A DNA stretch of 64,000 nucleotides from the sequence record MF459647.1; one strand, 5' to 3'. Positions 40,705 through 62,379 of this stretch are shown here, piece by piece. The notes under the pieces were generated by a model. It did no database searches. It was not told the origin of the DNA and saw nothing but the letters and a program-made list of their open reading frames with translations. How positions within the stretch are numbered: position 1 is the stretch's first letter; each line of letters opens with the position of its first letter. Made by a program: the position numbers and the translations under genes.

Positions 40705-41001
40705 AGTGCTGACGTCTTCCTCGGCGTGCCGTTTAACATCGCCAGCTACGCGCTGCTGATTCACATGGTTGCTCAACAGGTTAACATGGTGCCTGAAGAG
40801 TTCGTGTGGACAGGCGGTGATGTGCATCTGTACTCTAACCACCTGGAACAGATTAAAGAACAGCTGACCCGTGAACCACGTCCGCTGCCAAAACTGGTTA
40901 TCAAACATAAGCCGGCCTCTATCTTTGAATATAACTTCATTGACTTTGAGCTGCAGGATTATGATTCACATCCGACCATCAAAGCACCGGTCGCGATTTA
41001 A
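40705..41001 (+). CDS. thyA: Thymidylate synthase, exon 2
   Basis: [15 protein letters not shown]...GDVHLYSNH...IKAPVAI. Confidence 0.95.
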
Positions 41002-47159: not shown

Positions 47160-47168
47160 GGTGTAATC

Positions 47169-47684
47169 ATGCGCTATTGGATTCGTCGTGACACGTTAAG
47201 TTATGAACTTAGCGAAGATGACATGTCGTTCATGGGCTATGTGGAAGTAACCAAACGTCCCGATGTCTATTCGGAAGTTTACTCGTGGTCCTTTGCAGAA
47301 GGCCGCTGGGTAGCTGACCGTGAAGCATTGCGTGTTGCTATTGCTCAGCGTCGTTTTGATGTTGAAACCGCCGGGGTGTATGTGGGTGAATACCGCATCG
47401 ACACCACTGACCGCGGTAAGTTGATGTTAATGATGGCGGCAAGCCGTGCAGAGTCTCTGCCGGAAGGCACGTTGGTGTCGTGGAAAGTCTCCAATGATTC
47501 CTACACCTCGTTCACCCCTGCTCAAATCATTGCATTAAAGAACGAAGTGTGTGACTACATCGGTCAGTGTTTTGAATACGAACGTTTGTTAGCGGACCGC
47601 ATTATCCGCCAGGATTTTGATGTTGCTGAAATCACCGTTGGGTGGCCAAGTAACGTCATTACTCTGCCTGGGGTAGCGGCGTAA
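47169..47684 (+). CDS. DUF4376 tail-fibre assembly chaperone-like protein
   Basis: IAQRRFDVETAGV...IDTTDRGK...WKVSND...CFEYE...GWP; lies between two fibre genes. Confidence 0.8.
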   Translation: MRYWIRRDTLSYELSEDDMSFMGYVEVTKRPDVYSEVYSWSFAEGRWVADREALRVAIAQRRFDVETAGVYVGEYRIDTTDRGKLMLMMAASRAESLPEGTLVSWKVSNDSYTSFTPAQIIALKNEVCDYIGQCFEYERLLADRIIRQDFDVAEITVGWPSNVITLPGVAA

Positions 47685-47739
47685 TTTGTTGTCCGGTTCT
47701 GTTGGGGGAGCCGGACAATTTCTCTTTATTGGTGATGGC

Positions 47740-50199
47740 ATGAAACCGATCAATGAATTGGATGTATTTGTACCAGAGGTTCCTCTCTTAGAAGAATCGG
47801 ATTTGGTAAAGGGCGGGGAACAAGGCCCGAGTAATGCTCAAGCACTGGCATTGGCGAGCCGTACCCATTTTCTCAATGAGCGTCGTAAAGAACTCGAAAC
47901 CGAACTCGACCGCATTGATACCGCACTCAGTGGTTTAGATGCCGATAAAGTCGGGGCTGATGCTAAAGGCACAGCAACCGGTTTGATTGATGCTCACGTA
48001 AAAGACGCAGACCCACACATTCAGTATTTAACCGATGCTCGTGGTAAACTGTTGTTTGTGGATAAAACCACCGCCAACAAACCGAACGGGTATCTGCAGT
48101 TAGATGCCAACGGGAAACTGCCGGCCGGCGTTGTAACCAGCTTATCGGCACGTTACGTTATTGTGGCTGATGAAACCGAACGACTGAAGTTAACAATCAC
48201 GAACGACCTTACCATTGCAGCGCAGCAATCTGACGATACCCTGTACTACTTAAATGCCGGGACTGATCCTTCTGTCAAAGGCAATTGGATTAAAGGTCAA
48301 TCGGCTACGGTATCGGGCGTCGTATCTTTCTTTGGTCGTACCGGGGTAATTACTGCTGAAAGCGGTGACTATACGGCTGACCAGATTAATGAAACGTTAA
48401 CGCGGTTATTTGTTTCCCCTCAAGAGAAACAGACCTGGAACCAGAAACAGGATAAGCTGGTTTCCGGTACCAACATTAAAACCTTTAAAGGACAGTCTTT
48501 GGTTGGGGCGGGCGACCTTTCATTCAACTATGCTGACTTTGGTGCAGCAGCTGAAATACACAAGCATGTGGCTTCGGATATCACTGACTTTAATGATAAG
48601 GTAGACGGGCGTGCTTCTTCTTTATTAAAGGCAGGCCAAAACATACAGCTCGTGGTTGATCCTACAACCAAAGCCGTTACCATTAATGCGGCACCACCTA
48701 ATGCGGCTTCATTGTTTGCTTCGGTTGACCGAATGGGTTCGGCTGCAAACCAGATGCACGTGATAAACTTCAACCAGGATATAACGTACAACCTGGAAGC
48801 GTATGCTTTGAAGTTAGAGAAGGGGTCGACTAACCAGGTGTATACCTTGGAAACGTTTGATCCAACTTCTGCACCGTTCTTTAACTCTACCCAATATCTG
48901 ACCTTTAACGGTGTTTTGGGTGTGGCGTATAACTGGACACCGACGCTGCGTCAAAACAAAACGCGTTATGAAATGGAATTCGATCCGAACGTTAATGCTT
49001 TATCACTGTTCTCTACAGCCGGTAAAAACATTATCCCGGTGATGGCAGGCAATGGTGGGATTAACGGTTATGTGCCGTTTGCATCTTCGGAGTACAGTGC
49101 GGACTATACAGCATATCGTGCGTTCTCCAACCTCCAGGCTGCTAATGGTGCATCAGACTGTTGGGCATCAGGTAAAGGCCAAGTTCCGTCTGCTGCTAAC
49201 CCACAATGGATAGGTATCTCTTTGCCTGCGGGCGTTAAGATAACAGCGTACAGTTTTGTGAACCGTAGTGCAGGTGCGGTATCCACACCGTCTAAATATA
49301 AACTCCAGGGCAGTAACGATAAAACCACCTGGGATGACATTGAAGCGGTACGCTCTAACACTAACGATGCAGCGGCGTTTGAGTTCTTCCATTCAGCGAG
49401 ACCTACCAAAGCCTATCAGCATTATCGTCTCTACATTACTGAACGTTATCCTAACAATCCCGACTATGACTTTGTCGTGGTTTGGCGTTTACGGTTGTAT
49501 GTAGAGAAACCGGTGGTGTTCCAGGGTGAGACCAGTGATGCTTTATACACACTGGACAGTAATAACGTATTGGTTCCGTTAACTGACATCTCTGACGCGG
49601 GTATTGAAGCACAGGGTATTTCGGTGGCTAAAAATATTCCACCGGCAAACCTGTTGGCTTATCCGTTGAAAAAGATTGTGGGACTGGAACCCTCTACCCT
49701 GAACGTCAAGCTTGTCCCGATGGAACAGATCGCCATCATGAAAGACCCGTTGGTGACGAAGCCGTTTAGTAAAATAAACGCCATGAACTACACCGCGGTC
49801 CTGTTGGAAAAGACCCGGTACGCTATCTCCCCTGACGGTGTTACCTTCTATACTTACAACGGCGGTACGTGGACGTCATTAGGGGCGTTGAAGAACGACC
49901 TGGCGTCAGCGAAGAAATTGGCGGCTCAAGGTATGATGAACGGCTTGGCAACAGGGACTATCATGACCTTGTACACCCAGCTGGGGATTAGATTCACGGC
50001 GTTCAGTTTGGCCTACGGGATTTTCCCAACGGTAGCCAACGAAGTTATCTCGGTCGACCAAACGTTGTTGAGTGTGGATTTCGCGGATACGTGGAAGAAA
50101 CAAACACCGGCTGAGGTAGAGATTCGTTACAGCTCCGGGAATATCTCCTTTAAAACGGTGGCAGCGGGAGACTACAAGCTAGTTTACCAAGTCGCCTAA
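47740..50199 (+). CDS. Second tail-fibre / receptor-binding protein with a discoidin domain
   Basis: Collinear paralog of 44769; YRAFSN...PQWIGISL...YKLQGSNDKTTW...YQHYRL; start placed at ATG 47740. Confidence 0.8.
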   Translation: MKPINELDVFVPEVPLLEESDLVKGGEQGPSNAQALALASRTHFLNERRKELETELDRIDTALSGLDADKVGADAKGTATGLIDAHVKDADPHIQYLTDARGKLLFVDKTTANKPNGYLQLDANGKLPAGVVTSLSARYVIVADETERLKLTITNDLTIAAQQSDDTLYYLNAGTDPSVKGNWIKGQSATVSGVVSFFGRTGVITAESGDYTADQINETLTRLFVSPQEKQTWNQKQDKLVSGTNIKTFKGQSLVGAGDLSFNYADFGAAAEIHKHVASDITDFNDKVDGRASSLLKAGQNIQLVVDPTTKAVTINAAPPNAASLFASVDRMGSAANQMHVINFNQDITYNLEAYALKLEKGSTNQVYTLETFDPTSAPFFNSTQYLTFNGVLGVAYNWTPTLRQNKTRYEMEFDPNVNALSLFSTAGKNIIPVMAGNGGINGYVPFASSEYSADYTAYRAFSNLQAANGASDCWASGKGQVPSAANPQWIGISLPAGVKITAYSFVNRSAGAVSTPSKYKLQGSNDKTTWDDIEAVRSNTNDAAAFEFFHSARPTKAYQHYRLYITERYPNNPDYDFVVVWRLRLYVEKPVVFQGETSDALYTLDSNNVLVPLTDISDAGIEAQGISVAKNIPPANLLAYPLKKIVGLEPSTLNVKLVPMEQIAIMKDPLVTKPFSKINAMNYTAVLLEKTRYAISPDGVTFYTYNGGTWTSLGALKNDLASAKKLAAQGMMNGLATGTIMTLYTQLGIRFTAFSLAYGIFPTVANEVISVDQTLLSVDFADTWKKQTPAEVEIRYSSGNISFKTVAAGDYKLVYQVA

Positions 50200-50221
50200 T
50201 TTTATGGTAGGTTCAATATTG

Positions 50222-50260
50222 CTCAGCCTCCCTTTCGGAGGCTGAGTACTTTCTATTTTT
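50222..50260 (+). terminator. Stem-loop
   Basis: ctcagcctcc/ggaggctgag followed by a T-rich tail. Confidence 0.65.
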
Positions 50261-50274
50261 ACAAGGCGATTCGT

Positions 50275-51144
50275 ATGGGCTTAAATCTTCGTTTTATGCC
50301 TTACACTGATGGGGATTCTGACGGGGTGGATATTTACCGAGCCACATCCAAGACCGGTGAGCGTCAGCTCATGAAGAGTCTGGCCGCTGGGATTCATGAG
50401 TTTAGCGACCACAGTGTGGAAGCCAATAAAGTGTATTGGTACTGGATACTGAACAAATCTGCTGCCAACGGAGACCGACTCAGCCAACCCATGAGTGCAC
50501 CAACGTTCATTGATTTGGGCCCCGGTCCGAAGAAACTGCTACGTGGGGATTGGGACTTCGGTTACCTGGGGTATGTCCCGGTTGCGGATATGTTCACCTA
50601 TGCTCAAGCACAGAGCGCGGCAGCCATTCAAGCAGCACCGGATGGCGGCACACTGAACGGATTCCATAAGTGTGTAGTACGGGGACGGATTATTTACTTT
50701 GGGGATGTCATTTATTCCCGCACGGTGAACCGGACCACGGTAGGGAATGCCCTGTTAGCGCAGGACAGCAATCCGTTAACCACAGCACCTCGTCTGGCGG
50801 TAAATGATTATGAGTACATCGTACGGTGCCCTTACTCTTCTACTTTATCTACTACTGCGGTTGTGGGTACGGGTGACGGGTTGGATGGCACCATCAAACT
50901 CAGTGAAGTCGGCATGCTGGCGTCGCTTATTCTGGATGCAGATACTGCTGGTAAGCTTAGTGGGAATAAGCTGAGTGATCTCGCTAATAATGGGATATCA
51001 ACCTTTTATTTCTCTAATACGTACGCTGCTAACAATGTTGTGAACGTGTTCAGTCTGGTTGCTGATGCGTCTATCGGACCTGCCAGTGACATGACAGGGA
51101 ACCGTCCATTCTGGCCTGTCTTCGAGTTAGTGCTACACGAATAA
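50275..51144 (+). CDS. Virion paralog: FN3-like N-terminus, GPGP..LLRGDW.FG, ...WPVFEL
   Basis: Motifs shared with 53837, 54780, 58325 and 59300. Confidence 0.75.
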   Translation: MGLNLRFMPYTDGDSDGVDIYRATSKTGERQLMKSLAAGIHEFSDHSVEANKVYWYWILNKSAANGDRLSQPMSAPTFIDLGPGPKKLLRGDWDFGYLGYVPVADMFTYAQAQSAAAIQAAPDGGTLNGFHKCVVRGRIIYFGDVIYSRTVNRTTVGNALLAQDSNPLTTAPRLAVNDYEYIVRCPYSSTLSTTAVVGTGDGLDGTIKLSEVGMLASLILDADTAGKLSGNKLSDLANNGISTFYFSNTYAANNVVNVFSLVADASIGPASDMTGNRPFWPVFELVLHE

Positions 51145-51170: not shown

Positions 51171-52922
51171 ATGAGTTTACCGAGTCGGCAACTCTTTTTA
51201 GACCGTTTTATGGAAGTAAACCGTATACGGTATAAAAACGATCCTGAAGTTTTGGACCGGTTGAACAAGCTCACTGTAAAAGACATTGTCTTTGAGGGGC
51301 TGACCGAAGACCCAAACCGACCTGGGGGGATGATTTCCAACTTCTCGGTACCTGCCAAAGCCATTGAAGCCTATGCGCAACGATGGATTCCGGTAGACAT
51401 CAAGAGCAAACACATCATCAATCCAGCAAACGTTACCAATGTCCCGACATTGAATGACGTCATTGCTGCGCAAGCCCGCGGGTTGTTTACCTATCAGGAT
51501 AATGGGTCAACCAAACTAGCGATCGTTATGGCCTTCCGTCAAGATATCCCTGTGGAGAACTTGGCGAAAGAAGTTACCAAAACCTTAAACCGCACAACCA
51601 GTTACGTCATTAAAGACGGTGACCTGCAAATAAACTTCAACGACTCCACGGATGATTATAGATTATTTGATGTTCGTAATGAGACCATCAGCGGTGAAGT
51701 AGCAGTGATTCGTCTCCCCAGTAACCTGTTAAAAGGAACCTGGTGGTTAGGCTATCTGGGTGAGTGGACACCTGATGAAGTTATCCGTCCCAGTATTCTG
51801 GCCGAAATGGTTGGGGTGCCGAATGGGATTAACCCAGACGTGGAATGGTTAAAGTTCTCAGTAGAGGGCCGCATCATTTATGTTGCCAAACGACCCATTA
51901 GCAAAATGGTCAGTTATGGTAGCCTGTCGGGGTTAAACCTGGTAGACGGTAACCGTATTGTTGATATCGATCATGAACAGTACAAGATTCGACTGTTAAC
52001 CGCAGAAGACTCTGACACGTCCGACTGGAACCGGGTGATGTACCGTGTTTCTGAAGATGACCCCACAGGAACTTTCTGGGAAGAGTTCACCGACCAAGAG
52101 TTAGGTATCAATAACTCTGATAACGGTGGGATTACCCTGTCTCGTTCTGAAAGTGGTGGGTCGGTCTACGGTCGTGGTCGTTACAGCATCACGTCTCTGC
52201 AATCTGTTATTAAAACCGCTTCTTCTCCGGCAACGGGCTGGCGTCCTGTTCTGGAACTTATCGGTGTTGACAATATTGAATACGCACCGACAGCACACTT
52301 AACCGGCGTGATTCCTGTTGAACCTGAGATGTCAGGCGGAGCATCGGGTGACTTTGTTTATGCCGTAGGTCCTGTGGCTTCACGCATGACGGAACACACC
52401 GACTTTAACGGTTACCGTTATGATGATGTCGTCTTTGCGGTGCAGGGTGTCGAGGTCTATCAGAACCAGTTAGTGCCGGCAACGGAAATTGTTGACTACA
52501 GCTACGTCGCGGTCTTCAACGTTATGTCGGTAGAGGTTAAACCTGACACGGTCGTGAAACCCACGGAAATTACAGGGTCGAGAATTCAGGACGTTGTAAT
52601 TGTACCAAATACCGTTAAGTCAACGGTTGACCCTGACTGGCTGGAGTCTGACAATAACACCGCCGTGTCGAACGGAATCATTTCAGCCGTTGCAAAACGC
52701 GGTGTTATCACTTTGTTACCAACTTCGGGTTACGCTAATACCGCTGACTCAAACAGCGTGGTTGGGGCCGTAACGAAGAAAGGTAGCTATGTCATTGCCG
52801 CTGATTTTGTAATTGAAGAGATTACGTTTAACGGCATCGACAACTGGATTCCAGAAACAGACTACGGCGATCTGTTTGAAGAAGAAGTGTATAATCCTGA
52901 CACGACATTTATGTCTTTCTAA
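51171..52922 (+). CDS. Long virion paralog (QLFLDRF domain + WRPVLEL domain + PETDYGDL tail); cassette 1 gene A
   Basis: Collinear with 55752. Confidence 0.75.
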   Translation: MSLPSRQLFLDRFMEVNRIRYKNDPEVLDRLNKLTVKDIVFEGLTEDPNRPGGMISNFSVPAKAIEAYAQRWIPVDIKSKHIINPANVTNVPTLNDVIAAQARGLFTYQDNGSTKLAIVMAFRQDIPVENLAKEVTKTLNRTTSYVIKDGDLQINFNDSTDDYRLFDVRNETISGEVAVIRLPSNLLKGTWWLGYLGEWTPDEVIRPSILAEMVGVPNGINPDVEWLKFSVEGRIIYVAKRPISKMVSYGSLSGLNLVDGNRIVDIDHEQYKIRLLTAEDSDTSDWNRVMYRVSEDDPTGTFWEEFTDQELGINNSDNGGITLSRSESGGSVYGRGRYSITSLQSVIKTASSPATGWRPVLELIGVDNIEYAPTAHLTGVIPVEPEMSGGASGDFVYAVGPVASRMTEHTDFNGYRYDDVVFAVQGVEVYQNQLVPATEIVDYSYVAVFNVMSVEVKPDTVVKPTEITGSRIQDVVIVPNTVKSTVDPDWLESDNNTAVSNGIISAVAKRGVITLLPTSGYANTADSNSVVGAVTKKGSYVIAADFVIEEITFNGIDNWIPETDYGDLFEEEVYNPDTTFMSF

Positions 52923-52935
52923 AAGAGAGTAAATC

Positions 52936-53832
52936 ATGGGCATTCGTCTCGAAATTACTAACAAAAACACCGTACCGGTAACGATTAACGTTTACCGTGG
53001 TGATCAAGAACTGGACCGTGCTAATCTCCCGCCGGCAATTGGTCAGATTGCCAACACCACCGATAACCCGGCTATCTTTAATGATAACACGGTGGTGCAA
53101 GGCAAAACGTATTTCTACGTGTTTGAAACCGTGGGACCGAAAGATCGTGCCTACACCCGTAACTTCAAAATCCAGGCGCTGGAAACCCGCGGTCCGGGTG
53201 ATAACGATCTCAAAATCGGCAACCGCAACCTGGGGTATTACGGCAACCTGTCAGCCGGTGCGATTACTGATGCCGCGTCTCTGTGCTCTGCGATCGGTTT
53301 GACCGGCCACACCGTTAACTCCTTTGCGACCTGGTACAAATTTGCGCGTAAAGGCAAAGTGCTGTTTGTGCCGAACGCACACATTGCTCGCGGTGGGATG
53401 TCGTTCAACAAACTGAAGACGCTCGGTCTGGTGGACGGCAAAACCATCACCATCGGTGCCTTTAAATATAAAGTGCGTCTGATGAGCGGTTGGGATGACA
53501 GCAAAGCGCTGGATGCGAACATGGTGGTAGGTACTAACTACAGCATGGAAGATTACCTGGACAACTCTTGCGAATTCAACGACCTGGTATATCCGCTGGT
53601 GAAGTGGACACCTAACGGTCAGCATTTGCCAGGTCTGTTCCAGCAGACAGTTACGGCGGTAACGTCTAACACGCTGCCGCTGTGCAAGGATAACGACGGT
53701 ACAAAATTTGTGCGCCGCACTATGGCGGCTGATACCCGTGCCGCTGTTTCCACCATTGCTATCGATAATACACCAGACGCTGTAAACGCTTCTTACAGCC
53801 TGCTGCCGGTTCTGGAACTCATCGAGGGGTAA
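52936..53832 (+). CDS. Virion paralog (FN3-like, ETRGPG, ...LPVLELIEG); cassette 1 gene B
   Basis: Collinear with 57432 (WYKFARKGKVLFVP vs WVKFARKGKVFFVP; CEFNDLVYPL in both). Confidence 0.8.
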   Translation: MGIRLEITNKNTVPVTINVYRGDQELDRANLPPAIGQIANTTDNPAIFNDNTVVQGKTYFYVFETVGPKDRAYTRNFKIQALETRGPGDNDLKIGNRNLGYYGNLSAGAITDAASLCSAIGLTGHTVNSFATWYKFARKGKVLFVPNAHIARGGMSFNKLKTLGLVDGKTITIGAFKYKVRLMSGWDDSKALDANMVVGTNYSMEDYLDNSCEFNDLVYPLVKWTPNGQHLPGLFQQTVTAVTSNTLPLCKDNDGTKFVRRTMAADTRAAVSTIAIDNTPDAVNASYSLLPVLELIEG

Positions 53833-53836
53833 TCTC

Positions 53837-54769
53837 ATGTCATTAGTGGTGCAATGGGAAGATATCCCAGATGCCGCTGGTTACGAAATCTATCGGTCTA
53901 AGACGAAGTTCTCTTTGAGCACGTTGCCGACCGATAAGGTTAGTGTGCCGGCTGGTGCAACGGAATACGAATACACCGACGTGGATCGCCAAACCGTTTA
54001 CTGGTTTGCTATTCGTACCCTCGACGCTAACGGAGCAGGAACCTTTGGTCAAGTCTTCCCGTTAGGTTATTTCCCGGACACCGGTCCTGGTCCTTCTACA
54101 TTGTTACGTGGGGACTGGGCGTTTGGTTTCTTTGGGGAAGTTAGCCCGAGTCTGGTAGGGACATCGGACGAAGTGTATGCTCAACTGACGCAGACAACGG
54201 CGGATAACCCCATCAAGCCTACGGTAAAAGATTTTGTTTACCTGAAATGCATTGTGAACGGGAAGATTGTCTTTATTCCTTCGTCTCCGTTTGCAACCTA
54301 TGCGGTGATGGGAACGACGGCGCATTACATCTCAATAGGTGCAACGGGCGATGCTGGGTTAGATGACAACACCGCACCGGTTATCAAACTCAAGGGACGG
54401 GATTACCGTCACCGCTTACCAAGAGCAAGCAACAGCAAATCCACAGCGGGAACTGTTAATCTGGATGTGGTATCAGACGATGTGTTAATGTCTGAGGTCG
54501 GTATGTTAGCGGCGCTCCTGTTATCGACCGCTGAAACAGACGTGTCGAAGAACCCAGACAACCGTAATGCCGCACCGTTGCATTATCGTCTCGGTGACTA
54601 TACCGATCTTGCCAACGTCATTACGCTTCATCGTTTCGCTAACTACGGTGGCGACAACAACTCGCTGTACAGTTACGTTGTTACGCCAAGCACGGGCGCT
54701 ATTGCAAACAAGGTCTGGTATTACACCGACCCGAAAGCCTACCTGCCGGTATTAGAACTGCTCTTCTAA
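53837..54769 (+). CDS. Virion paralog (FN3-like, DTGPGP, ...LPVLELLF); cassette 1 gene C
   Basis: Collinear with 58325. Confidence 0.8.
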   Translation: MSLVVQWEDIPDAAGYEIYRSKTKFSLSTLPTDKVSVPAGATEYEYTDVDRQTVYWFAIRTLDANGAGTFGQVFPLGYFPDTGPGPSTLLRGDWAFGFFGEVSPSLVGTSDEVYAQLTQTTADNPIKPTVKDFVYLKCIVNGKIVFIPSSPFATYAVMGTTAHYISIGATGDAGLDDNTAPVIKLKGRDYRHRLPRASNSKSTAGTVNLDVVSDDVLMSEVGMLAALLLSTAETDVSKNPDNRNAAPLHYRLGDYTDLANVITLHRFANYGGDNNSLYSYVVTPSTGAIANKVWYYTDPKAYLPVLELLF

Positions 54770-54779
54770 GGAGAACATA

Positions 54780-55640
54780 ATGGGTGTGAAGATTCAGTGG
54801 ATTGACCCCAATATCGATCCATTAGATACAGTAGAAATCTGGCGTTCTCCCACAAAAGCCGGTGCGCCGGTTAAGATTGGGAGTGTGGCTGGCGACGTGC
54901 GTGAGTATCAGGACGATACAGCTGAACGAAACAAAGTTAGTTGGTACACACTGACTTCAGTGCGTGGTCAAGGCAAAGCCATCAGTACACCGTTTCCGGT
55001 AGGTAACTATCCTGATACGGGTCCAGGCCCTAAAACCATCATGCGTGGTACGTGGGAGTTTGGTGTGTTCGGTGAAGTGGATGCTAACCTGCTTCCGGGT
55101 TTCAGTGAAATCCAGGAGAAGGTGGGTATCGCTCCGAACAATTCCGTGGTCCGATTCTACAAATGGATTGTTAACGGCCGCATCATCTTTATTCCATGGG
55201 GACCGTACAGCAGTGCGTTTGGTACTACTATCACTGCTGCCGGTATCATGGTGCCTCAGGGTAAAACGAATGAGGCGGGTTTGGTGATTGATCGTGAGGG
55301 GTACGGCTACAACATTCGTCCTCCTTACGCGACCAACAACTTCACCAGTGAACTAACGACCATTGCTGACGGTGGGGATGAAACCCTGAAGCTTTCAGAG
55401 TTGGCTGCAATTATGACCAGTCTGGTTGGGATGGACACGAAGTTAATGTACGGTGACATGAAGTGGGGTGATATTTCTCCTGCTGCAGCGGGCGGTAACT
55501 ATTACCTGACCAACACCTACATTAACGCCAACAACTCCACCCTGGTAGCAAACATCGCAGCGTCACCGGCGTTAGTGAGATCAGGTAGTACATCTTCTGC
55601 TCGTGGCTTGTGGCCCGTGTACGAACTGCTGTTAACATAA
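54780..55640 (+). CDS. Virion paralog (FN3-like, DTGPGP, ...WPVYELLLT); cassette 1 gene D
   Basis: Collinear with 59300. Confidence 0.8.
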   Translation: MGVKIQWIDPNIDPLDTVEIWRSPTKAGAPVKIGSVAGDVREYQDDTAERNKVSWYTLTSVRGQGKAISTPFPVGNYPDTGPGPKTIMRGTWEFGVFGEVDANLLPGFSEIQEKVGIAPNNSVVRFYKWIVNGRIIFIPWGPYSSAFGTTITAAGIMVPQGKTNEAGLVIDREGYGYNIRPPYATNNFTSELTTIADGGDETLKLSELAAIMTSLVGMDTKLMYGDMKWGDISPAAAGGNYYLTNTYINANNSTLVANIAASPALVRSGSTSSARGLWPVYELLLT

Positions 55641-55648
55641 TGGGGACA

Positions 55649-55672
55649 CCTCCTCCCTTCACTGGGAGGAGG
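55649..55672 (+). terminator. Stem-loop with TTCACT loop at the cassette junction
   Basis: cctcctccc-ttcact-gggaggagg. Confidence 0.6.
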
Positions 55673-55694
55673 GTCTTATATAACTGATGGCAAA

Positions 55695-55702
55695 ATGTTA
55701 TG
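55695..55702 (+). promoter_or_regulatory. Late-type TATG promoter motif
   Basis: atgtTATG upstream of cassette 2. Confidence 0.45.
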
Positions 55703-55751
55703 TTCCTGATTTCTTTATCCCTTATTATCCGTAAACGGAGAGGTACATGAC

Positions 55752-57416
55752 GTGAGTATAAACAGGCGTCAGCTCTTCCTGGACAGGTTCCTTGCCTATA
55801 ACAGGTCGCGCTATAAAGATAACCCTGACGCACTCAAACGACTGGACAGACTCACCTTCGAGGACATGGTTTTCGATGGCATTGCTATTGATACCAGCAA
55901 AGCCGGTGAGCTTCGTCGTCGCGTCGCTAACTTCCATGCCGATGCGCAAATGATGGAAGGTGTTGATCAACGCTGGACGTGCACCAGTCTGTTGCATCGC
56001 AAAGTCATCCCCACTGAAAACTATATCAACAGCACGCCGTTTGCCTCTCTGGAAGATTTTAAGAAAGTTAACCTGCAAGGTGTGTATCAGTATTTAGATG
56101 ACGGTGTTCCGGTATTGGGTGTGGTACTTGCTACCGACTCGTCTAAAACCGAAGACGTTACCCCGGAGTTGATTACACTCCTGAACACGGTATCTCGTTA
56201 CCAACTGTTAACCACCGAGCTGTCAATTGAAGCTGCTGACCGTGACCACTTCCCAATGCACTTCACCTACATGGGTGATACCATTGTGGGTCGCATTACT
56301 GTCATCCGTCAAGCTGCAGACCGACCTGCGGTAGGTAACGAAATTCTTGGTTATTACGGTGAGTTCCCGTCCGACTACTTAATCTCCAGCGGTGTATTGG
56401 CTGAGATGTTAGGGTTGGCTGGTGATAAACTGATTACCGGTGCAGAGACAGTGCCGTGGTTGAAGTTTGCTTACTTCGGTAAACTCCTGCATGTGTCAAA
56501 GCGTCCTATCAGTAAAAACATGACGTGGACGGCGCTGAACGACATGGGGTTAGTTGACGGCTCCCGTATTATTCAGTTAGGTAATAAGCGTTATCGGGTA
56601 CGTTTATTACACGGAGCAGCAAATGACTTCGGTAATGAATGGAACGACCTCATCTATCGCGTTCATTATCAAGATCCAACTAATACGTTCTGGGAGCGAT
56701 TCACAGACGAAGAGATGGGGCTTGGTTGGGATGCAGTTACCAACAAATGGTATCGTGATGGGTCCATTGCCTTTACCCAGGATGCAGTCGATGCTACTAC
56801 GGTGGTAACACGTGGTGGCGGGCAGGATGGTGCGTCACTGACCGTGACCGGTACCGTAGCGAAAACCACGACCAGCAAGTATTACGGTTGGCGACCGGTG
56901 TTGGAATACATTGGAACAAGCGGAATAGATACACCGTACATTGCGGATATCAGTTCTCCACTGTCGTTGGATTTCTCATCTGAAATCAACACCGACTTTA
57001 CTGGGGTCTTGCGTCCGTTTGGGTTTGACGTGGAAATGGTGCCGGATGCGAAGATTGTACCTAGCGCTGTTAACAACGTTACCCTGTTTGCGGTGAAGTT
57101 GGATTCTGCTTCGCTGGTAGGTAGTGCAGAAGCTCCGGTTGTCACCAAAATCGAAAACAACTCGGTGAAATTCCCACGTGATGTCAGACTGGATAAAATG
57201 GTCCCGTTAACGTGTGACATCTATTCACTGGAAGAGCCGGACGATACAGTTAGACTGGCTACGGTCGACATGGGTGACATCACTCCACGTCAAATTCGAC
57301 CAACCATTCCATTAGCGGCACAGGACCTCGGTGACATTGCAACCAAACAAGTCAACCCAGATGCTGATGGGAAATACAACGGTCTGTTTACCCATAACGG
57401 CACGCTACATTATTAA
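55752..57416 (+). CDS. Long virion paralog; cassette 2 gene A
   Basis: RRQLFLDRFLAYNRSRYK; WLKFAYFGKLLHVSKRPIS; GWRPVLEY. Confidence 0.75.
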   Translation: MSINRRQLFLDRFLAYNRSRYKDNPDALKRLDRLTFEDMVFDGIAIDTSKAGELRRRVANFHADAQMMEGVDQRWTCTSLLHRKVIPTENYINSTPFASLEDFKKVNLQGVYQYLDDGVPVLGVVLATDSSKTEDVTPELITLLNTVSRYQLLTTELSIEAADRDHFPMHFTYMGDTIVGRITVIRQAADRPAVGNEILGYYGEFPSDYLISSGVLAEMLGLAGDKLITGAETVPWLKFAYFGKLLHVSKRPISKNMTWTALNDMGLVDGSRIIQLGNKRYRVRLLHGAANDFGNEWNDLIYRVHYQDPTNTFWERFTDEEMGLGWDAVTNKWYRDGSIAFTQDAVDATTVVTRGGGQDGASLTVTGTVAKTTTSKYYGWRPVLEYIGTSGIDTPYIADISSPLSLDFSSEINTDFTGVLRPFGFDVEMVPDAKIVPSAVNNVTLFAVKLDSASLVGSAEAPVVTKIENNSVKFPRDVRLDKMVPLTCDIYSLEEPDDTVRLATVDMGDITPRQIRPTIPLAAQDLGDIATKQVNPDADGKYNGLFTHNGTLHY

Positions 57417-57431
57417 TTCATAGGAACAGTC

Positions 57432-58322
57432 ATGGCTATTCTGATTAAATTCAACAACCCCAATGCTGATGACATTACCCTGAATGTCTATCGAGCAGAT
57501 GCTGAAATGGACCGCAGCAAACTTCCGGCTCCGCTGGCTACCTTAACCGGTCGCCCAACTGAGTTCCTGGACAAAACTGCTGTGCAGGGCAAAACCTACT
57601 TCTATATCTTCGAAGCTATCGGTAACAACGACCGTGACATCTCTCGCAACATTAAACTGATTGCAGCAGAAACACGCGGTCCAGGCAACAACATTCTGAA
57701 AGAAGGCACTCGTGAGCTAGGCCACTATGACGTGATGCCGGCGTCTGACCTGCTGGATTACCAACAGCTGTTTGCTAAGATGGGTAACCCTGCTGGCTTT
57801 ACAGCGAGTAACTTCACGAACTGGGTTAAGTTTGCACGCAAAGGGAAAGTCTTCTTTGTGCCTTCATCACCTATTGGGGTAGCTATGCCTCAGGCAATGA
57901 AAGATGCCGGCTTTATGGGTGACGGTAAGATTATTGAACAGAACGGGTTCAAATACCGTGTTCGTTTAGCACGCGGTTGCAGTGAAACCGATGCCGAAGC
58001 GACGACGTTCCTGGCGGATAAAGTCGCGTTGACTAACTACGACATGGATACATTTGATATCAGTTGTGAATTCAACGATCTGGTGTACCCGCTGTTAAAC
58101 GTTACGCCGTTAAAACAACGGTTGTCAAATAAACTCAATGGCAGCATCAAAACGATAACAGGTAGTCGCTTTGTTCCTGTAAAGGAAGCATTGGCTGATT
58201 CGTCTCCGGTGTCCCGTACCTATTACGACGCAACCGATCGTACCCAGGCGACGTGTCTTCGTGCTATTGCTCTTAACGTGGCTTGTGCGTTCTGGCCGGT
58301 ATTAGAACTGATTGAGGGCTAA
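57432..58322 (+). CDS. Virion paralog; cassette 2 gene B
   Basis: ETRGPG; FWPVLELIEG. Confidence 0.8.
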   Translation: MAILIKFNNPNADDITLNVYRADAEMDRSKLPAPLATLTGRPTEFLDKTAVQGKTYFYIFEAIGNNDRDISRNIKLIAAETRGPGNNILKEGTRELGHYDVMPASDLLDYQQLFAKMGNPAGFTASNFTNWVKFARKGKVFFVPSSPIGVAMPQAMKDAGFMGDGKIIEQNGFKYRVRLARGCSETDAEATTFLADKVALTNYDMDTFDISCEFNDLVYPLLNVTPLKQRLSNKLNGSIKTITGSRFVPVKEALADSSPVSRTYYDATDRTQATCLRAIALNVACAFWPVLELIEG

Positions 58323-58324
58323 TT

Positions 58325-59290
58325 ATGGCAGTCATTATTAGTTGGAAGCCCATAGCCAACGCCGACAAGATTCGCGTGTATCAATCAACTACTCCGTTCA
58401 CGTTTGCAGACATTGCCGGGAACCCCGCTATTACCATGGTAGAAGTGCCCGGGACTGATGTTAGCAAAGCTGTGACCATCCCACGTAATAACGTGCACTG
58501 GTTCGCGTTGTCAGCGGTTGATGCAGACGGTCTGGAGTTGTTCTGTGAAGTGTTCCCAATGGGTAACTTCCCTAACACCGGACCTGGGCCGGATACCATT
58601 CTTCGTGGTAACTGGGATTTCGGTTTGTTTGGTGAGCTTTCTACCGAACAGCTGTTTACTAATGCTGAACTAGGTGCAGGAATTGTTGCAGCAGGTGCGA
58701 CCGTTGATAACGTTACCAGCGGCAACCGTATCACCAAGTGGTTTAAGTGTATCGTTAACGGGAAGATTCTGTTTATCCCAAATAACTACGTTTATCTCAT
58801 GCCTGAAGGTGGCGATAAACCGACCCTGTTAGCCCAGCGTAAGTTGAGCATGACCGCCGGGTTTCCGGGTGCAGCTGTTCTAAGCAAGAACGGCAATGAT
58901 TTCATGTATCGTTTACCGTCCTATACCCGAAGTGTGCCTGCTGGGCAAATCACGCAGCCAGCCTCTGACGATATCTTGAGTTCTGAAGCCGGGATGATTG
59001 CGGCATTAGAAACAGGGGCATTGAAAATTGGGCGAAACAGCGTGGGGGTTGGGCGCACTCCGTATAACGTGTGGGATAACCTCGGTGATATGGTCTTGGG
59101 TTCAACTGGTAACACCCCGCTGGCAACGGCGAACTATTATTCAGTAAGTTCGAACATGCAATGGGGTGTGCACTGCATGATTCCTCGTGATGGGTCGTAC
59201 ATGACCTACGGGATTCAGCAGTGGTTCCAGAACAGTAGCGTCTCCTACGGTAACTTCTACGTCATGCCGATTCTTGAATTGGTCTTCTAA
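58325..59290 (+). CDS. Virion paralog; cassette 2 gene C
   Basis: NTGPGPDTILRGNWDFG; VMPILELVF. Confidence 0.8.
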   Translation: MAVIISWKPIANADKIRVYQSTTPFTFADIAGNPAITMVEVPGTDVSKAVTIPRNNVHWFALSAVDADGLELFCEVFPMGNFPNTGPGPDTILRGNWDFGLFGELSTEQLFTNAELGAGIVAAGATVDNVTSGNRITKWFKCIVNGKILFIPNNYVYLMPEGGDKPTLLAQRKLSMTAGFPGAAVLSKNGNDFMYRLPSYTRSVPAGQITQPASDDILSSEAGMIAALETGALKIGRNSVGVGRTPYNVWDNLGDMVLGSTGNTPLATANYYSVSSNMQWGVHCMIPRDGSYMTYGIQQWFQNSSVSYGNFYVMPILELVF

Positions 59291-59299
59291 GGATATCCA

Positions 59300-60154
59300 A
59301 TGAGCATTACTATTAACTTTCGTAACCGCAACATTGATGCCCTGGATGAGATTCGTATTTACCGTACGGAGAACCGGGGTGTTGCACCAACCCTGATTGC
59401 GACCATTACCAACGACAAGGTCTTTTACAAGGACACAACAGCCCAGTACAACCAACTGTACTTCTATCAGACCGGTGCGGTGTATCAAGGTATCGAAAAC
59501 CGCAGCGAACTGTTCCCGGCTATTGCGTTCCGTAATAATGACAACGGTCCGGGTCCACAAAAGCTCATTCGCGGTAACTTTGAGTTTGGGCTGTTTGGTC
59601 CGGTGGACATGAATGACCTGCCGTCGTTTGATGCAGTGTCGGTATCAGCAGGTGTTACCCGTAACGTTACGGGTAACCCAACGGTGGCGCTGAAGTGGTG
59701 TATTAATGGCAAAATCATTTACACCTTTAATGCTGCGTTCCACACAGGCATCTCCAAAGACAACCTGAAGAAGCTGTTCATTGCTGCAAACAAAGAGTCG
59801 GACTTCTTCAGTATCGACTTAGCGGGGAAAACCTTTAAAGTACGTCCGCCGTTTGCCACTACACTGCGTGGGGCCATCGTAGGGACCGGGGAAACCTATC
59901 CCCTGACGTGGTCAACGGATGTTCAGCAAAGTGAAGCAGGCGCGATTATGCGCAGCTATCTGGGGTCTGCTGTTATCAAGGCCGGCGATCGGATGTATGA
60001 CCTGGCTCCGTTACCGGCGGGTGGCTTCTGGACTAACACCTACTATGACCTGAACACATACTACATGTTCTATCTGGACGGCAACACAAGCGCCTATCGT
60101 GCATCCTCTGGAACGGGTCCTTTCTATCCGGTGTATGAACTGATGCTTGATTAA
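59300..60154 (+). CDS. Virion paralog; cassette 2 gene D
   Basis: GPGPQKLIRGNFEFG; FYPVYELMLD. Confidence 0.8.
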   Translation: MSITINFRNRNIDALDEIRIYRTENRGVAPTLIATITNDKVFYKDTTAQYNQLYFYQTGAVYQGIENRSELFPAIAFRNNDNGPGPQKLIRGNFEFGLFGPVDMNDLPSFDAVSVSAGVTRNVTGNPTVALKWCINGKIIYTFNAAFHTGISKDNLKKLFIAANKESDFFSIDLAGKTFKVRPPFATTLRGAIVGTGETYPLTWSTDVQQSEAGAIMRSYLGSAVIKAGDRMYDLAPLPAGGFWTNTYYDLNTYYMFYLDGNTSAYRASSGTGPFYPVYELMLD

Positions 60155-60169
60155 TAAACTGGAGACTTA

Positions 60170-60754
60170 ATGAAAATTCCAAACATGCAGTTGTTTTTGG
60201 ACAGGTTCATTAGCGTTAACAGAGTCAGGTATCGGCAACAGCCGAGCGTTTTGGCTATCCTCGACACATTGACATTAAAGAACGTTATCTTCTCGAAGGT
60301 GCGTTCTGATATTGATGCGTTCGGGGAACTGGTGCGTACAGTGGACATGTACGTGCCAAAAGTCATGAAGGCCATGGACCAAAGTTGGTTACCTGCCTAC
60401 TACACCACTCCGCGTATCACCAACATGGTGACTACTGATGTGCAGGATGAAAACGATCTCATCACGCTCGAGGTACCGGGGTTCTACTTTTACAAGGACC
60501 GTTACAGTAAAGTGCAGGGATGCGTGGTGGTGCCTGCCCAGATTAATTCGGAAGACATTGCGGATTACGTCAAGGACATGGTAAAGAATGCAAATGCTTA
60601 CCAAATCAATGACGACCAAATCTCGGTAGCCGGTAACTTCTCTGAGGTTATTGTAGACACCCCCGCCATCTACCAACGACTCAAGCTTGTCCTTTCTCTG
60701 CGTGATTTCTCATTTAATATCCCCGACACGGACTACGGGGATTTGGGGGTCTGA
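60170..60754 (+). CDS. Virion protein: QLFLDRF domain plus IPDTDYGDL
   Basis: N- and C-terminal motifs shared with 51171. Confidence 0.75.
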   Translation: MKIPNMQLFLDRFISVNRVRYRQQPSVLAILDTLTLKNVIFSKVRSDIDAFGELVRTVDMYVPKVMKAMDQSWLPAYYTTPRITNMVTTDVQDENDLITLEVPGFYFYKDRYSKVQGCVVVPAQINSEDIADYVKDMVKNANAYQINDDQISVAGNFSEVIVDTPAIYQRLKLVLSLRDFSFNIPDTDYGDLGV

Positions 60755-60794
60755 ATTTTATGGACCGATTATTATAACACCGAGGTAATTTATT

Positions 60795-61430
60795 ATGGGA
60801 ATGCTTGACCAACGTCAGCTATTTCTGGATAAGTTCGTTGCGTATAACAAACAACGTTATGCCTCCGAACCTAACAAAGTTGCGGCGTTCGATAACTTAT
60901 CGTTGAGCGACGTCCAGTTCGGTACCATCACCAAGACGGAAGATAACGGCGTTTACAAACGCTCTTACGACCACGTTAACTCAACTACTCGTAACTTCAC
61001 GTCTGACCCGCAGCGTTTCAATGCAGCTAACCTGGCCAGCCAGTGGGTAACCACAGCCAGCCAGATGGCGGACATTGCCGATGTGCGTGCTGCACCGCCG
61101 GGCATCTATTTCTACCTGGATGCGCTGAACAACAATGCTCGTACCCTGTGCGTGGTATATCCGTACGACTTCGATACCAGTGACGATGTCGCGTTCAAAG
61201 ATCAAATCTTCACCATGATCAACGGCGCGTGTAAATACGCACTGGATAAATCGGTCTTCGATATCCTGCCGTGGACTCAGTCTGACCCGACGGACAAAAT
61301 GACTTACGTTCAAGACGAAGTCATCGCGGGTTGGGTACTGACCATTAAAGGTACTCAGGATACGCTGGTCATTCCGGATACCGACTACGGCGATCTGATT
61401 AACGAACAAAACGGTGGCGTTGCGCCGTAA
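60795..61430 (+). CDS. Virion protein: QLFLDKF domain plus IPDTDYGDL
   Basis: Motifs as above; strong codon bias; TATG at 60759. Confidence 0.78.
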   Translation: MGMLDQRQLFLDKFVAYNKQRYASEPNKVAAFDNLSLSDVQFGTITKTEDNGVYKRSYDHVNSTTRNFTSDPQRFNAANLASQWVTTASQMADIADVRAAPPGIYFYLDALNNNARTLCVVYPYDFDTSDDVAFKDQIFTMINGACKYALDKSVFDILPWTQSDPTDKMTYVQDEVIAGWVLTIKGTQDTLVIPDTDYGDLINEQNGGVAP

Positions 61431-61448
61431 TAACGTTTGTTACTGACT

Positions 61449-61480
61449 AGGTTAACCCCGCGATGGGGTTAACCTTTTCT
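61449..61480 (+). terminator. Intrinsic terminator
   Basis: aggttaacccc/ggggttaacct followed by a T-run. Confidence 0.75.
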
Positions 61481-61503
61481 CTTTTCTGTTAAGGACATTT
61501 GAT

Positions 61504-62379
61504 ATGGACGCAAACCTGCAACTCTTCCTTGACAAGTTCATTGAGGTGAATAAGCAGAAGTATGCTGATGAACCTGAAGTGCTTGCTCTTCTGGAAGGAT
61601 TGACACTGGCGGATGTTGTTTTCGACAGCATCGAAATCGATGAGAGTTTAGGCGAAGGCGGTCGTATTGCCAGCTTCCATTCTCCTTCCCGTAAATTCAA
61701 TGCCCCGCAACAACAGTGGCTTTGTTCAACTCTCCAGGGTAAGAACGTCGTTACCTTTACTGATGCAAAAGTGTTTGATGACAAAGCATCGGTAAAAGCA
61801 CTGACGGCACCAGGCGTCTACCTGCACAAAGCAGGCGACGCCACAGCGGTATCGGTATTGACAGCTGAAGACGTTGCCGATGTTGACACTGCAACGCAAA
61901 ACATCATTGCTGCTTTGACCGGCGCGGCGAATTATGAACTGAAGGTTGAAGACCTGCTGATTCCAACCTTTACCCTCGGAACAGATTTCGAAGGTCTGGT
62001 CAGTTCACACTGCATCGAAGACACGTTCAACGTGTACTTTATCCCGAAAGCGACAGCTCCGTCTGAACCGGGTGACGGTGGTGAAACTGATCCAGGTACT
62101 GGCGGCGGTGAAACCGGTGGTGAAGGTGAAGGTGGCGAACCTGAAGTGGATCCTAACGAACCGGTAATCACGCCGGAAATGGAAGCCGAAGATAAAGCCC
62201 TGGCCGACCCAACTGCCGGTGGTATTTATTCTGACGTAGGTGACAAAGGGTTTGGTGTATTAACTGTACCGCGTGAAATCTCTGAAGAGACAGCCAACAT
62301 CGCTACCATCACTGGTATGACGTTTGGTCTGGTAGGCGCTGGTTCTCTGCAGGTGGAGACTTTAAATGAAAACGCGTAA
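61504..62379 (+). CDS. Virion protein: QLFLDKF domain plus a Gly/Glu/Pro-rich linker
   Basis: LQLFLDKFIEVNKQKY; PSEPGDGGETDPGTGGGETGGEGEGGEPE. Confidence 0.75.
   Translation: MDANLQLFLDKFIEVNKQKYADEPEVLALLEGLTLADVVFDSIEIDESLGEGGRIASFHSPSRKFNAPQQQWLCSTLQGKNVVTFTDAKVFDDKASVKALTAPGVYLHKAGDATAVSVLTAEDVADVDTATQNIIAALTGAANYELKVEDLLIPTFTLGTDFEGLVSSHCIEDTFNVYFIPKATAPSEPGDGGETDPGTGGGETGGEGEGGEPEVDPNEPVITPEMEAEDKALADPTAGGIYSDVGDKGFGVLTVPREISEETANIATITGMTFGLVGAGSLQVETLNENA

Follow-up and report, generated by a model that had tools for sequence, protein, structure and literature searches.

The jumbo phages related to phiKZ carry about 20 to 50 virion proteins that have been given neither a place nor a role. 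Among the largest groups of these is the family that the Thomas laboratory described in 2016-2017 as "paralog family B" of phage SPN3US, the products of the gp138-154 array (Thomas 2016, PMC5105663; Ali 2017, PMC5694885; later Scheuch 2023, PMC10052503). The subject of this paper is a related array of virion genes in Erwinia phage vB_EamM_Joad (hereafter Joad), a 235-kb myovirus of the genus Risingsunvirus that infects Erwinia amylovora and is distant kin to phiKZ. The window analysed, a stretch of 64,000 nucleotides from record MF459647.1, contains between positions 50275 and 60154 nine genes in which an ordered block of four (A, B, C and D) occurs twice, preceded by an extra D-type gene, D0. 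Judged by sequence comparison, the array proteins are near certain to belong to SPN3US paralog family B, and with about even confidence we read them as components of a hetero-oligomeric, exposed head or neck appendage that comes in two diverged versions.

Two other systems of phiKZ-like phages invite comparison. Proteins with the DUF7941 domain, such as gp22 and gp23 of phage Goslar and gp126 and gp127 of phiKZ, resemble the Joad proteins in being restricted to the phiKZ-like phages (chimalliviruses), with many paralogues per genome, and in having short forms that consist of an N-terminal module only next to long forms with extra, sometimes carbohydrate-binding, domains. A Goslar study of November 2026 (PMC13742148) proposed that they are head-to-tail polymers that make up a "fiber cloud" at the peripheral baseplate, and reported that Goslar gp22 forms filaments in vitro. 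The gp131-gp135 proteins of phiKZ (Sycheva 2012; PMC13250141) are likewise clustered paralogues with a common N-terminal domain and divergent C-termini. They have been proposed to build a hetero-oligomeric fibre base, and the phiKZ fibres are described as paralogues with a common N-terminal attachment domain and two docking sites per baseplate lobe (PMC13250141).

The duplicated unit and its protein modules

Between positions 50000 and 62000 the window is 100% identical to the deposited Joad genome (the window coordinate is the record coordinate minus 124000) and 99.3% identical to the genome of the sibling phage RisingSun. The nine open reading frames all lie on the + strand, are free of internal stops and frameshifts, and are without exception labelled "putative virion structural protein" in the record. 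D0 (gp198, 289 amino acids; 50275..51144) is followed by A1 (gp199, 583 amino acids; 51171..52922), B1 (gp200, 298; 52936..53832), C1 (gp201, 310; 53837..54769) and D1 (gp202, 286; 54780..55640), and these by A2 (gp203, 554; 55752..57416), B2 (gp204, 296; 57432..58322), C2 (gp205, 321; 58325..59290) and D2 (gp206, 284; 59300..60154). An earlier interpretation of this DNA from its letters alone (the sequence-only reading) had given the same positions, lengths and strand. Its central observation, an ordered four-gene unit in two copies whose order has been kept despite deep divergence, was borne out, as was the D-like gene that it had noticed ahead of the first cassette, which is D0.

An all-versus-all BLASTP comparison upheld the proposed matching of A with A, B with B, C with C and D with D. 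The two B proteins share 43% identity (E-value 3e-67), the two C proteins 32% (E 2e-39) and the two D proteins 32% (E 1.6e-36), in each case over the full length; A1 and A2 share 33% (E 5e-70), with an alignment that covers only residues 1-401 of the former and 1-422 of the latter. The peptides that had been quoted as common to the two cassettes were all found in both partners at equivalent positions, for example GWRPVLE at residue 356 of A1 and 379 of A2, and KCIVNGKI.FIP at residue 137 of C1 and 141 of C2. Given these E-values and shared peptides, the duplication is real and well beyond chance, and it has left cassettes that now stand at 32-43% identity. For A, B and C, the best relative within the genome is the same slot of the other cassette, while the best match of D1 is, narrowly, D0 (29% identity, E 4.7e-38, versus 1.6e-36 for D2). 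Furthermore, B, C, D and D0 are mutually paralogous (E 1e-29 for C1 and D1, 8e-22 for C2 and D1). A description of the locus as A-B-C-D times two is too narrow, because the middle of the A proteins is the core module of B, C and D, and their N-terminus is also found in gp207, gp208 and gp209, just downstream.

At the DNA level the similarity between the cassettes is reduced to short conserved coding stretches, from which it follows that the duplication is old, and a DNA-level repeat search gave no sign of recent gene conversion between them. A family of 46-nucleotide direct repeats within C1 (54245-54290), D1 (55161-55206) and C2 (58745-58790) encodes the peptide KCIVNGKI.FIP, of which D1 has its own version. 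For RisingSun a single significant "regulatory motif" has been published (PMC6034870, Fig 6), and it falls within RisingSun gp196, 199, 200, 203 and 204. RisingSun gene numbers are the Joad numbers minus 2, and these five genes correspond to D0, C1, D1, C2 and D2. Because the motif sits inside these genes, it most likely reflects the conserved coding sequence of the paralogues and not a regulatory site.

The array proteins are assembled from a small number of modules. The core module is an alpha/beta unit of about 210 residues, which follows an Fn3-like domain in B, C, D and D0 (residues 1-80 in B1) and an N-domain of about 170 residues in A1 and A2 (residues 1-180 in A1). In A1 the core occupies residues 183-365 or so and is followed by an extension, residues 366-583, that ends in IPETDYGDL. 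A2 also has an N-domain, a core and a C-terminal extension, and the C-terminal 180-220 or so residues of the two A proteins do not align and are unrelated. The N-domain makes up the whole of gp207 (194 amino acids; 60170..60754, + strand) and gp208 (211 amino acids; 60795..61430, + strand; repeat family D4), and the first half of gp209 (291 amino acids; 61504..62379, + strand), which continues for about 130 more residues. The C-terminal IPDTDYGDL of gp207 resembles the end of A1, and gp208 ends in the same way as gp207. Scans of the whole Joad genome with hidden Markov models (HMMs) found exactly nine core modules, all inside the array, and five strong N-domains (A1, A2 and gp207-209), together with three weak ones elsewhere in the window. 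The A-type protein is the bridge that joins two paralogue families, one sharing the N-terminal module and the other the core module. The three weak N-domain matches are + strand open reading frames of about 220 codons at 19529-20212, 20245-20910 and 26262-26912 (E 5e-5, 5e-7 and 8e-4 to the N-domain profile; no Pfam matches), and their products may be distant further members of the N-domain family.

No Pfam domain was found in the array proteins; the sole marginal match, BD-FAE in gp207 (E 0.04), fell under the cut-off and was discarded. D0, B1, C1, D1, B2, C2 and D2 all match phrog_1062 over their full length (E 8e-33 to 5e-49). The AlphaFold2 model of B1, with a mean predicted local distance difference test score (pLDDT) of 92.8, joins an N-terminal beta-sandwich (residues 1-80) to a domain of mixed alpha/beta type. 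Its core domain closes with the strand formed by the conserved C-terminal peptide, which reads PVLELI in A1 and, as the last residues of B1, PVLELIEG; a loose version of the pattern recurs in 53 of 62 assembled family members and 73 of 80 database homologues of B1. A profile of the B/C/D family matched the Fn3 domain of a pectate lyase (PDB 3b4n) at E 7e-5. Sequence searches of the PDB with A1, B1, the B/C/D profile, the N-domain profile and the N-terminus of gp195 (a neighbouring lectin-domain protein, see below) returned only Fn3 domains (3b4n, 4u49) and chance matches, and Foldseek searches of the PDB with the B1 and A1 models gave no match below 1e-3, so that by both kinds of search the core module has no relative among solved structures. 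Foldseek matches to Caf1M and other usher-chaperone proteins reflect the Ig-like domain only, and glyoxalase-like matches to A1 were rejected for a template modelling (TM) score below 0.25. Against BFVD, the B1 model matched below 1e-3 only "virion structural proteins" of phiKZ-like phages or nameless entries. The core and the N-domain are modules found only in phiKZ-like phages.

The AlphaFold2 model of A1 is more uneven, with pLDDT 70-85 in the N-domain, 82-92 in the core and about 30 in residues 366-583, which also lack a Pfam domain. This extension may be flexible, or it may merely be unmodelled given an alignment of 22 sequences. Kelch propellers occur in some relatives of the A type, and an F5/8 type C domain in one protein of the N-domain family.

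SPN3US and the history of the unit

A tblastn search with D1 led to SPN3US gp150, inside the gp138-154 array. Further matches (gp146 with B2 at E 1.7e-27, gp153 with D1 at E 7e-22) revealed that the same kind of unit is present there three times, as gp145-146-147, gp148-149-150 and gp151-152-153. Of its three kinds of gene, those of 330 codons (gp146, gp149 and gp152) fall in the B clade with 100% bootstrap support, those of 300 codons (gp147, gp150 and gp153) have their best Joad matches among the D-type proteins, and those of 470-500 codons, at the A position, encode a core module in the middle. Both the 330- and the 300-codon trios are monophyletic at 100%, which makes the SPN3US triplication independent of the Joad duplication.

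The likeness between the two arrays extends to Fn3-like plus core proteins, a long A type that bears the core, an ordered tandem unit repeated en bloc and, going by the published proteomics of SPN3US and RisingSun, probably a virion location for the products. They differ in that the SPN3US unit has three genes, without C, in three copies, whereas that of Joad has four genes in two copies. They also differ at the N-terminus of the A type, which is DUF7941 in SPN3US (Pfam PF25613 in gp145, gp148 and gp151, E 5e-22 to 2e-31) and in Joad is an N-domain without detectable homology to DUF7941. SPN3US gp146, gp147, gp149 and gp150 have no significant Pfam match. Family B as delimited by PSI-BLAST includes the pure DUF7941 proteins gp138-144, which have no counterpart in Joad. 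The sequence-only reading had held that the locus is not explained by ordinary annotation; with paralog family B already published, this overstated its novelty. In the keyword-selected passages of the literature on SPN3US and related phages, neither the substructure of repeated units nor the bridging role of the A type was found described, and to that extent these two features may be new.

Tandem arrays of this family were found in Joad, RisingSun, FishSpeaker, SNU37, Noxifer, PhiEaH1, SA002, SPN3US and six metagenomic contigs. Two of these contigs, L008 and L015, whose proteins are 50-68% identical to those of Joad, have exactly D0 and two A-B-C-D units followed by short N-domain genes and a helicase gene. 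FishSpeaker has one A, one B, two C-type and one D gene along with a pair of short N-domain genes, all within the same GroEL-to-helicase setting. SNU37 and contig L017 have a single unit with a shorter A-type gene that lacks the N-domain, and a single unit is also seen in contig L010, which stops just past it. Contig L009 has two units that are not each other's closest relatives. On this comparison, A, B, C and D in that order, with short N-domain genes behind them, form an old conserved locus. In a Risingsunvirus-like ancestor, the A-B-C-D block would have been duplicated in tandem and the extra D gene gained.

The trees behind these statements were built by neighbour-joining with bootstrapping (62 proteins, 279 columns, 200 replicates). 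The sequence-only reading had expected equivalent genes of the two cassettes to be sisters, and had named grouping within cassettes as the outcome that would speak against it. Such grouping is absent, and the subtypes are monophyletic across phages (B at 100%, C at 80%, D at 73%). Sisterhood of the B1 and B2 groups has 71-79% support, and A1 and A2 match each other better (E 1e-69) than they match the A proteins of L010 or FishSpeaker. For the other two slots the expectation held less well: the sisterhood of C1 and C2 is weakly supported, and D1 and D2 are not sisters.

That the unit behaves as a set is supported, as far as gene arrangement can tell, by its independent en-bloc amplification to three copies in SPN3US and by the two copies in L009. 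In L009, the second unit has the single unit of SNU37 and L017 as its orthologue (92-100% bootstrap), and in the first unit B and D lie nearer to the Joad lineage (loci compared: L009 7053-14738, L005 8861-12698, L017 8867-12689). The two L009 units could stem from an old duplication with later loss, or from acquisition of a whole unit from another phage.

Within the genus, Joad and RisingSun differ at just 2 sites in the block from A1 to C2 (51171-59290, about 8.1 kb). In the flanks (50275-51144 and 59300-63715), there are 20-41 differing sites per kb in D0, D2 and gp207-209 and 144 per kb in gp210 (62366-63715), and the two phages are 94.5% identical over window positions 20000-44000. The A1-to-C2 block looks, from this pattern of differences, to have been recently shared through recombination; its borders (D0|A1 and C2|D2) differ from those of the cassettes.

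Two further sets of relatives deserve mention. Pseudomonas phage SL2 has a four-gene set, gp018-021 (L014 5001-9638), with products of 324, 649 (with Kelch repeats), 286 and 286 amino acids, and sets of this type also occur in PA7 (MZ444140), Churi, OMKO1 and other phages of the phiKZ genus; the first member matches residues 1-135 of D1. A tblastn search of phiKZ itself with the first SL2 gene gave no match. Homologues of B1 (87% identity) and A1 (81%) have been deposited as hypothetical proteins of Salmonella enterica on contigs of about 232.7 kb, and these entries are probably a related jumbo phage co-sequenced with a Salmonella isolate.

Location and assembly in the virion

The sequence-only reading took the array products to be virion components, and published proteomics supports this for the family. 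Crude-lysate proteomics of RisingSun (PMC6034870) yielded peptides from RisingSun gp196, gp200, gp204, gp206 and gp207, which are the counterparts of D0, D1 (5 peptides), D2 (6), gp208 (1) and gp209 (1), and all of the SPN3US cassette homologues were detected in purified virions (PMC10052503).

The strongest evidence on location is the retention of the SPN3US proteins by heads. In that study, triplicate wild-type virions were compared with tailless heads, purified on caesium chloride (CsCl), of a tail-tube mutant (PMC10052503, Table S2). The normalised ratio of heads to wild type was 1.06-1.67 for gp145-153, next to 1.39 for the major capsid protein and 1.40 for the portal. It was at most 0.03 for the sheath, tube and tape measure, at most 0.07 for tail and fibre proteins overall, and 0.004-0.013 for the gp131-like fibre candidates gp168-170. 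An earlier, independent tailless mutant gave the same head-fraction assignment. By analogy, these results argue against a baseplate organ in Joad. The peptide-spectrum matches (PSM) for gp145-153 amounted to 1.2-4.5 per kDa, versus 3.9 for the 12-copy portal (PMC10052503), and this nearness to the portal level implies that they are low-copy proteins; within the first unit the values were 1.2 : 1.2 : 1.6, or roughly equimolar. The Joad array proteins, as members of the same family, would likewise be low-copy virion proteins.

The head-retention data bear on the proposal, made in the sequence-only reading, that each cassette encodes an adsorption fibre of the baseplate. In that proposal A would anchor the fibre, its receptor-binding head would be an obligate heterotrimer of B, C and D, and each virion would carry tail fibres of two sorts. 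The tailless heads of two independent SPN3US mutants have lost their fibre proteins, yet keep the cassette homologues at full level. An obligate trimer of B, C and D also fails as a rule for the family, since the SPN3US units have no C gene and the RisingSun proteomics is biased to D. The phiKZ fibres, with the shared attachment domain and paired docking sites described above (PMC13250141), offer a precedent for such an arrangement, and the inheritance and duplication of the unit as a block fits it too, as do the lectin-domain genes upstream of the Joad array and the order of genes in several relatives, where the array follows tail sheath, long "tail fiber" and DUF4376 genes. However, neither module matches the phiKZ structures: the core gave no sequence-profile match to phiKZ baseplate or fibre chains at E<=1, the N-domain profile gave none to phiKZ chains in the PDB at E<=10 and thus no sign of an attachment domain of the gp131 type, and the best Foldseek match of A1 in phiKZ was chain 0 of 9xqd (E 0.17, TM score 0.36). 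In the phiKZ atlas (PMC13250141) and the Goslar structure much of the periphery is unmodelled. Two indirect routes to a place in the atlas were set aside, one through PA7 gp296, which matches Kelch proteins only, and one through SL2 gp018 and gp019, which have no PDB counterparts. The two sets also part ways in SPN3US, where the relatives of gp131 (family C, gp168-170) are proteins of the tail and those of the Joad array belong to the head fraction.

Joad has, moreover, a separate set of candidate fibre genes. Outside the window, at record positions 99130-110313 (L020 2131-13314), gp98 (labelled "tail fiber", 245 amino acids) is followed by gp99-101, three paralogues of about 1,100-1,170 amino acids without a Pfam match. 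In size, number and annotation this trio looks like the counterpart of SPN3US family C and the phiKZ gp131 fibre set, and its members are better fibre candidates than the array proteins. On balance, a baseplate fibre is a quite improbable identity for each cassette.

Association with heads would also be expected if the proteins were internal, packaged with the DNA and possibly ejected with it, which is the tentative idea of the SPN3US authors for abundant members of family B. The head-fraction assignment in both tailless mutants agrees with it, and the authors' label "Head ejection?" is attached to gp141, gp143 and gp160. Those three, however, are of the DUF7941 type and not of the Fn3-core type. 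Of the eight head proteins that the 2017 SPN3US study listed as proteolytically processed (a later count is nine), none belongs to family B. Fn3-like domains and Kelch or lectin fusions suit exposed ligand binders better than internal proteins, and the neighbouring genes are of lectin-domain and fibre type. An internal location is in our view very doubtful.

The DUF7941 proteins provide the remaining alternative, in which the Joad array would be the counterpart of the Goslar "fiber cloud". The N-domain proteins gp207-209, A1 and A2 would polymerise head to tail into flexible filaments, the C-terminal peptide of each docking on the next N-domain, and the cores of A, B, C and D would decorate or cap these filaments. 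Its appeal lies in SPN3US gp145, gp148 and gp151, which carry DUF7941 exactly where Joad A has its N-domain; Joad is without canonical DUF7941, and the N-domain family could have taken over that role. In both phages a C-terminal peptide is common to short and long forms (gp207, gp208 and A1 in Joad; gp160 and gp145, gp148 and gp151 in SPN3US), the part of A1 between core and end peptide has the pLDDT of about 30 that a flexible linker would have, and the Goslar study reports filaments of gp22 in vitro (PMC13742148). On the other side, the end-peptide pattern occurs in only 23 of 84 representatives of the N-domain family, the low confidence of the A1 tail may just reflect its 22-sequence alignment, and the A, B and D homologues of SPN3US are present at portal-level copies and not in the hundreds to thousands. 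Homology between the two N-terminal domains is undetectable. None of A1-D2, D0 and gp207-209 has a Pfam match to DUF7941 at E<=0.1, nor do any of 82 N-domain family members match it, with the same Pfam library that scores SPN3US gp141 at E 1e-84 as a control; an HMM of DUF7941 derived from SPN3US found nothing significant in the whole Joad genome, and profile-profile alignment (hhalign) of N-domain and DUF7941 gave probabilities of 0.2% and 0.6%. By these three kinds of search the Joad proteins are not DUF7941 members, and the core module in turn lies outside the DUF7941 domain. We regard the filament model as unlikely.

The literature itself is divided on DUF7941. In SPN3US the DUF7941 protein gp141 is in the head fraction (heads to wild type 1.44; PMC10052503), so that DUF7941 and Fn3-core proteins alike are placed with the head, while the Goslar study proposes a baseplate position for DUF7941. 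By keyword search, the words "SPN3US" and "tailless" are both missing from the Goslar paper (PMC13742148). Resolving this conflict would clarify the first host contact of phiKZ-like phages.

The model that we prefer is a head or neck appendage. Contacts between core modules would bring the products of one unit together in a hetero-oligomer exposed on the virion surface, tethered by the N-domain of A together with the short N-domain proteins. It would sit on the head or neck, if SPN3US is a guide, and not on the baseplate. The two diverged units would then give two versions of the appendage per virion, differing mainly in the C-terminal extensions of A1 and A2. Its likely role would be a weak or accessory contact with glycans of the host surface and not the primary function of a tail fibre; exposed, glycan-contacting proteins are suggested by the Fn3-like domains, the fusions of relatives to Kelch and F5/8 type C domains and the flanking lectin genes gp195 and gp197. 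The analogy with SPN3US points only weakly to this location and mode of assembly. Whatever their form, two facts constrain the role of the family: a fixed, ordered unit has been duplicated whole in separate lineages, and the A type joins two paralogue families.

Several observations weigh against this model. The RisingSun proteomics reported none of A1, A2, B1, B2, C1 and C2 (PMC6034870), so that three of three D-type proteins and none of the six others were seen, a poor fit to equimolar complexes; were three of the nine core-module proteins detected at random, all would be D-type with a chance of 1 in 84, which hints that D-types are more abundant than A, B and C. The sample was a crude lysate (PMC6034870). 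Head association is carried over to Joad and RisingSun from SPN3US proteins that are 25-30% identical, and the Goslar study places at the peripheral baseplate the very domain, DUF7941, that in SPN3US is fused to the core module. In Noxifer, PhiEaH1, SA002 and contig L016 the array adjoins tail sheath and "tail fiber" genes, which could suggest a tail function. As for two matched versions, the pairing of C1 with C2 has 72% support in one tree and less than 60% in the second, and D1 joins the D gene of L009 (L009_g4) at 68-81%, with D2 outside; the latter implies that no single clean event produced all of the genes, or that D genes were replaced later. All of these trees, furthermore, are neighbour-joining trees.

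A bolder extension sees A-B-(C)-D as a "plug-in" set of genes, complete in itself, that would be amplified en bloc and swapped between co-circulating phages and would build a heteromeric appendage of the head or neck, unlike any seen so far in phage structures. Its basis is the three copies in SPN3US, the two each in Risingsunvirus-like phages and in L009, and the A1-to-C2 block, with 2 differing sites in 8.1 kb compared with 2-5% nearby. If this were true, capsids would display variable, combinatorial ligand-binding structures apart from the tail fibres. We think it doubtful. For Joad itself, the gain is chiefly an improved annotation.

Transcription units and neighbouring genes

Gene spacing in the array is 2-40 bp except for three wider gaps, of 75 bp between gp197 and D0, 111 bp between D1 and A2, and 73 bp between gp208 and gp209. 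Each of the three contains a strong hairpin (z -3.6 to -5.1), and these hairpins split the array into two units. The first, at 50220..50248 (+ strand), has a 12-bp stem followed by a T-rich tail (-23.6 kcal/mol, z -5.1) and marks the upstream edge of the D0-D1 unit. The last, at 61449..61475 (+ strand), has a 12-bp stem followed by a T-run (-21.6 kcal/mol, z -3.6) and marks the downstream edge of the A2-gp208 unit. Between them, the cassette-junction hairpin at 55649..55672 (+ strand) has a G+C-rich stem of 9 bp (-26.2 kcal/mol, z -3.9), and none of 200 shuffled sequences folded as well. It is kept, at the same position, in L008 and L015 despite the 50-68% protein identity of those contigs to Joad; the tail that follows it is weaker in Joad than the T-rich tails of the outer two, and is a T-run in L008. 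As stable hairpins, the outer two with T-rich tails and the junction one conserved in relatives, they have the sequence features of intrinsic terminators, and termination itself is predicted. Their position makes D0-A1-B1-C1-D1 and A2-B2-C2-D2-gp207-gp208 the likely transcription units, with the hairpins as putative terminators.

The sequence-only reading had described the junction as marked by a hairpin and a TATG. The hairpin is real, while a lone TATG in a 111-bp gap is uninformative, the motif occurring 3.4 times per kb. This one, however, sits in a conserved A-rich stretch of 12 nucleotides with TTATGT (55692..55703, + strand), 3' of the hairpin, in which 11 of 12 columns are invariant among Joad, L008 and L015. 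The mean column identity of the whole intergenic region among the three is 80%, and the ribosome-binding site is also conserved. The 12-nucleotide stretch may be the promoter of the second cassette. A sigma-70 promoter scan was uninformative for Joad, with 9 matches versus 23 in shuffled sequence.

Upstream of the array, on the + strand, two lectin-domain paralogues flank a DUF4376 gene. The first, gp195 (796 amino acids; 44769..47159), has an F5/8 type C (discoidin) lectin-like domain (Pfam PF00754, E 1.5e-16), is labelled a carbohydrate-binding protein in the record, and shares 39% identity (E 5e-172) with gp197 (47740..50199, start taken from the deposited record), which has the same type of domain. 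The gene between them, gp196 (171 amino acids; 47169..47684), encodes a DUF4376 protein (Pfam PF14301, E 1.7e-15). In Noxifer, PhiEaH1 and L016 a DUF4376 gene lies between the long "tail fiber" gene and the array of genes of about 300 codons. When gp195 and gp197 were compared with the long "tail fiber" proteins from Noxifer, PhiEaH1, SA002 and L016, the outcome was a single weak N-terminal match (E 0.001), and homology was rejected. When Joad 44769-50199 is set beside L015 4272-7314, Joad and L008 have two lectin paralogues and L015 has one, with the DUF4376 gene before it, so the flanking locus also varies by duplication or loss.

Further upstream, about 150 phage records match a stretch of about 130 nucleotides in the thymidylate synthase region (40574-40705); its nucleotide identity to T4-like phages of Escherichia, Yersinia and Shigella is 60-90%.

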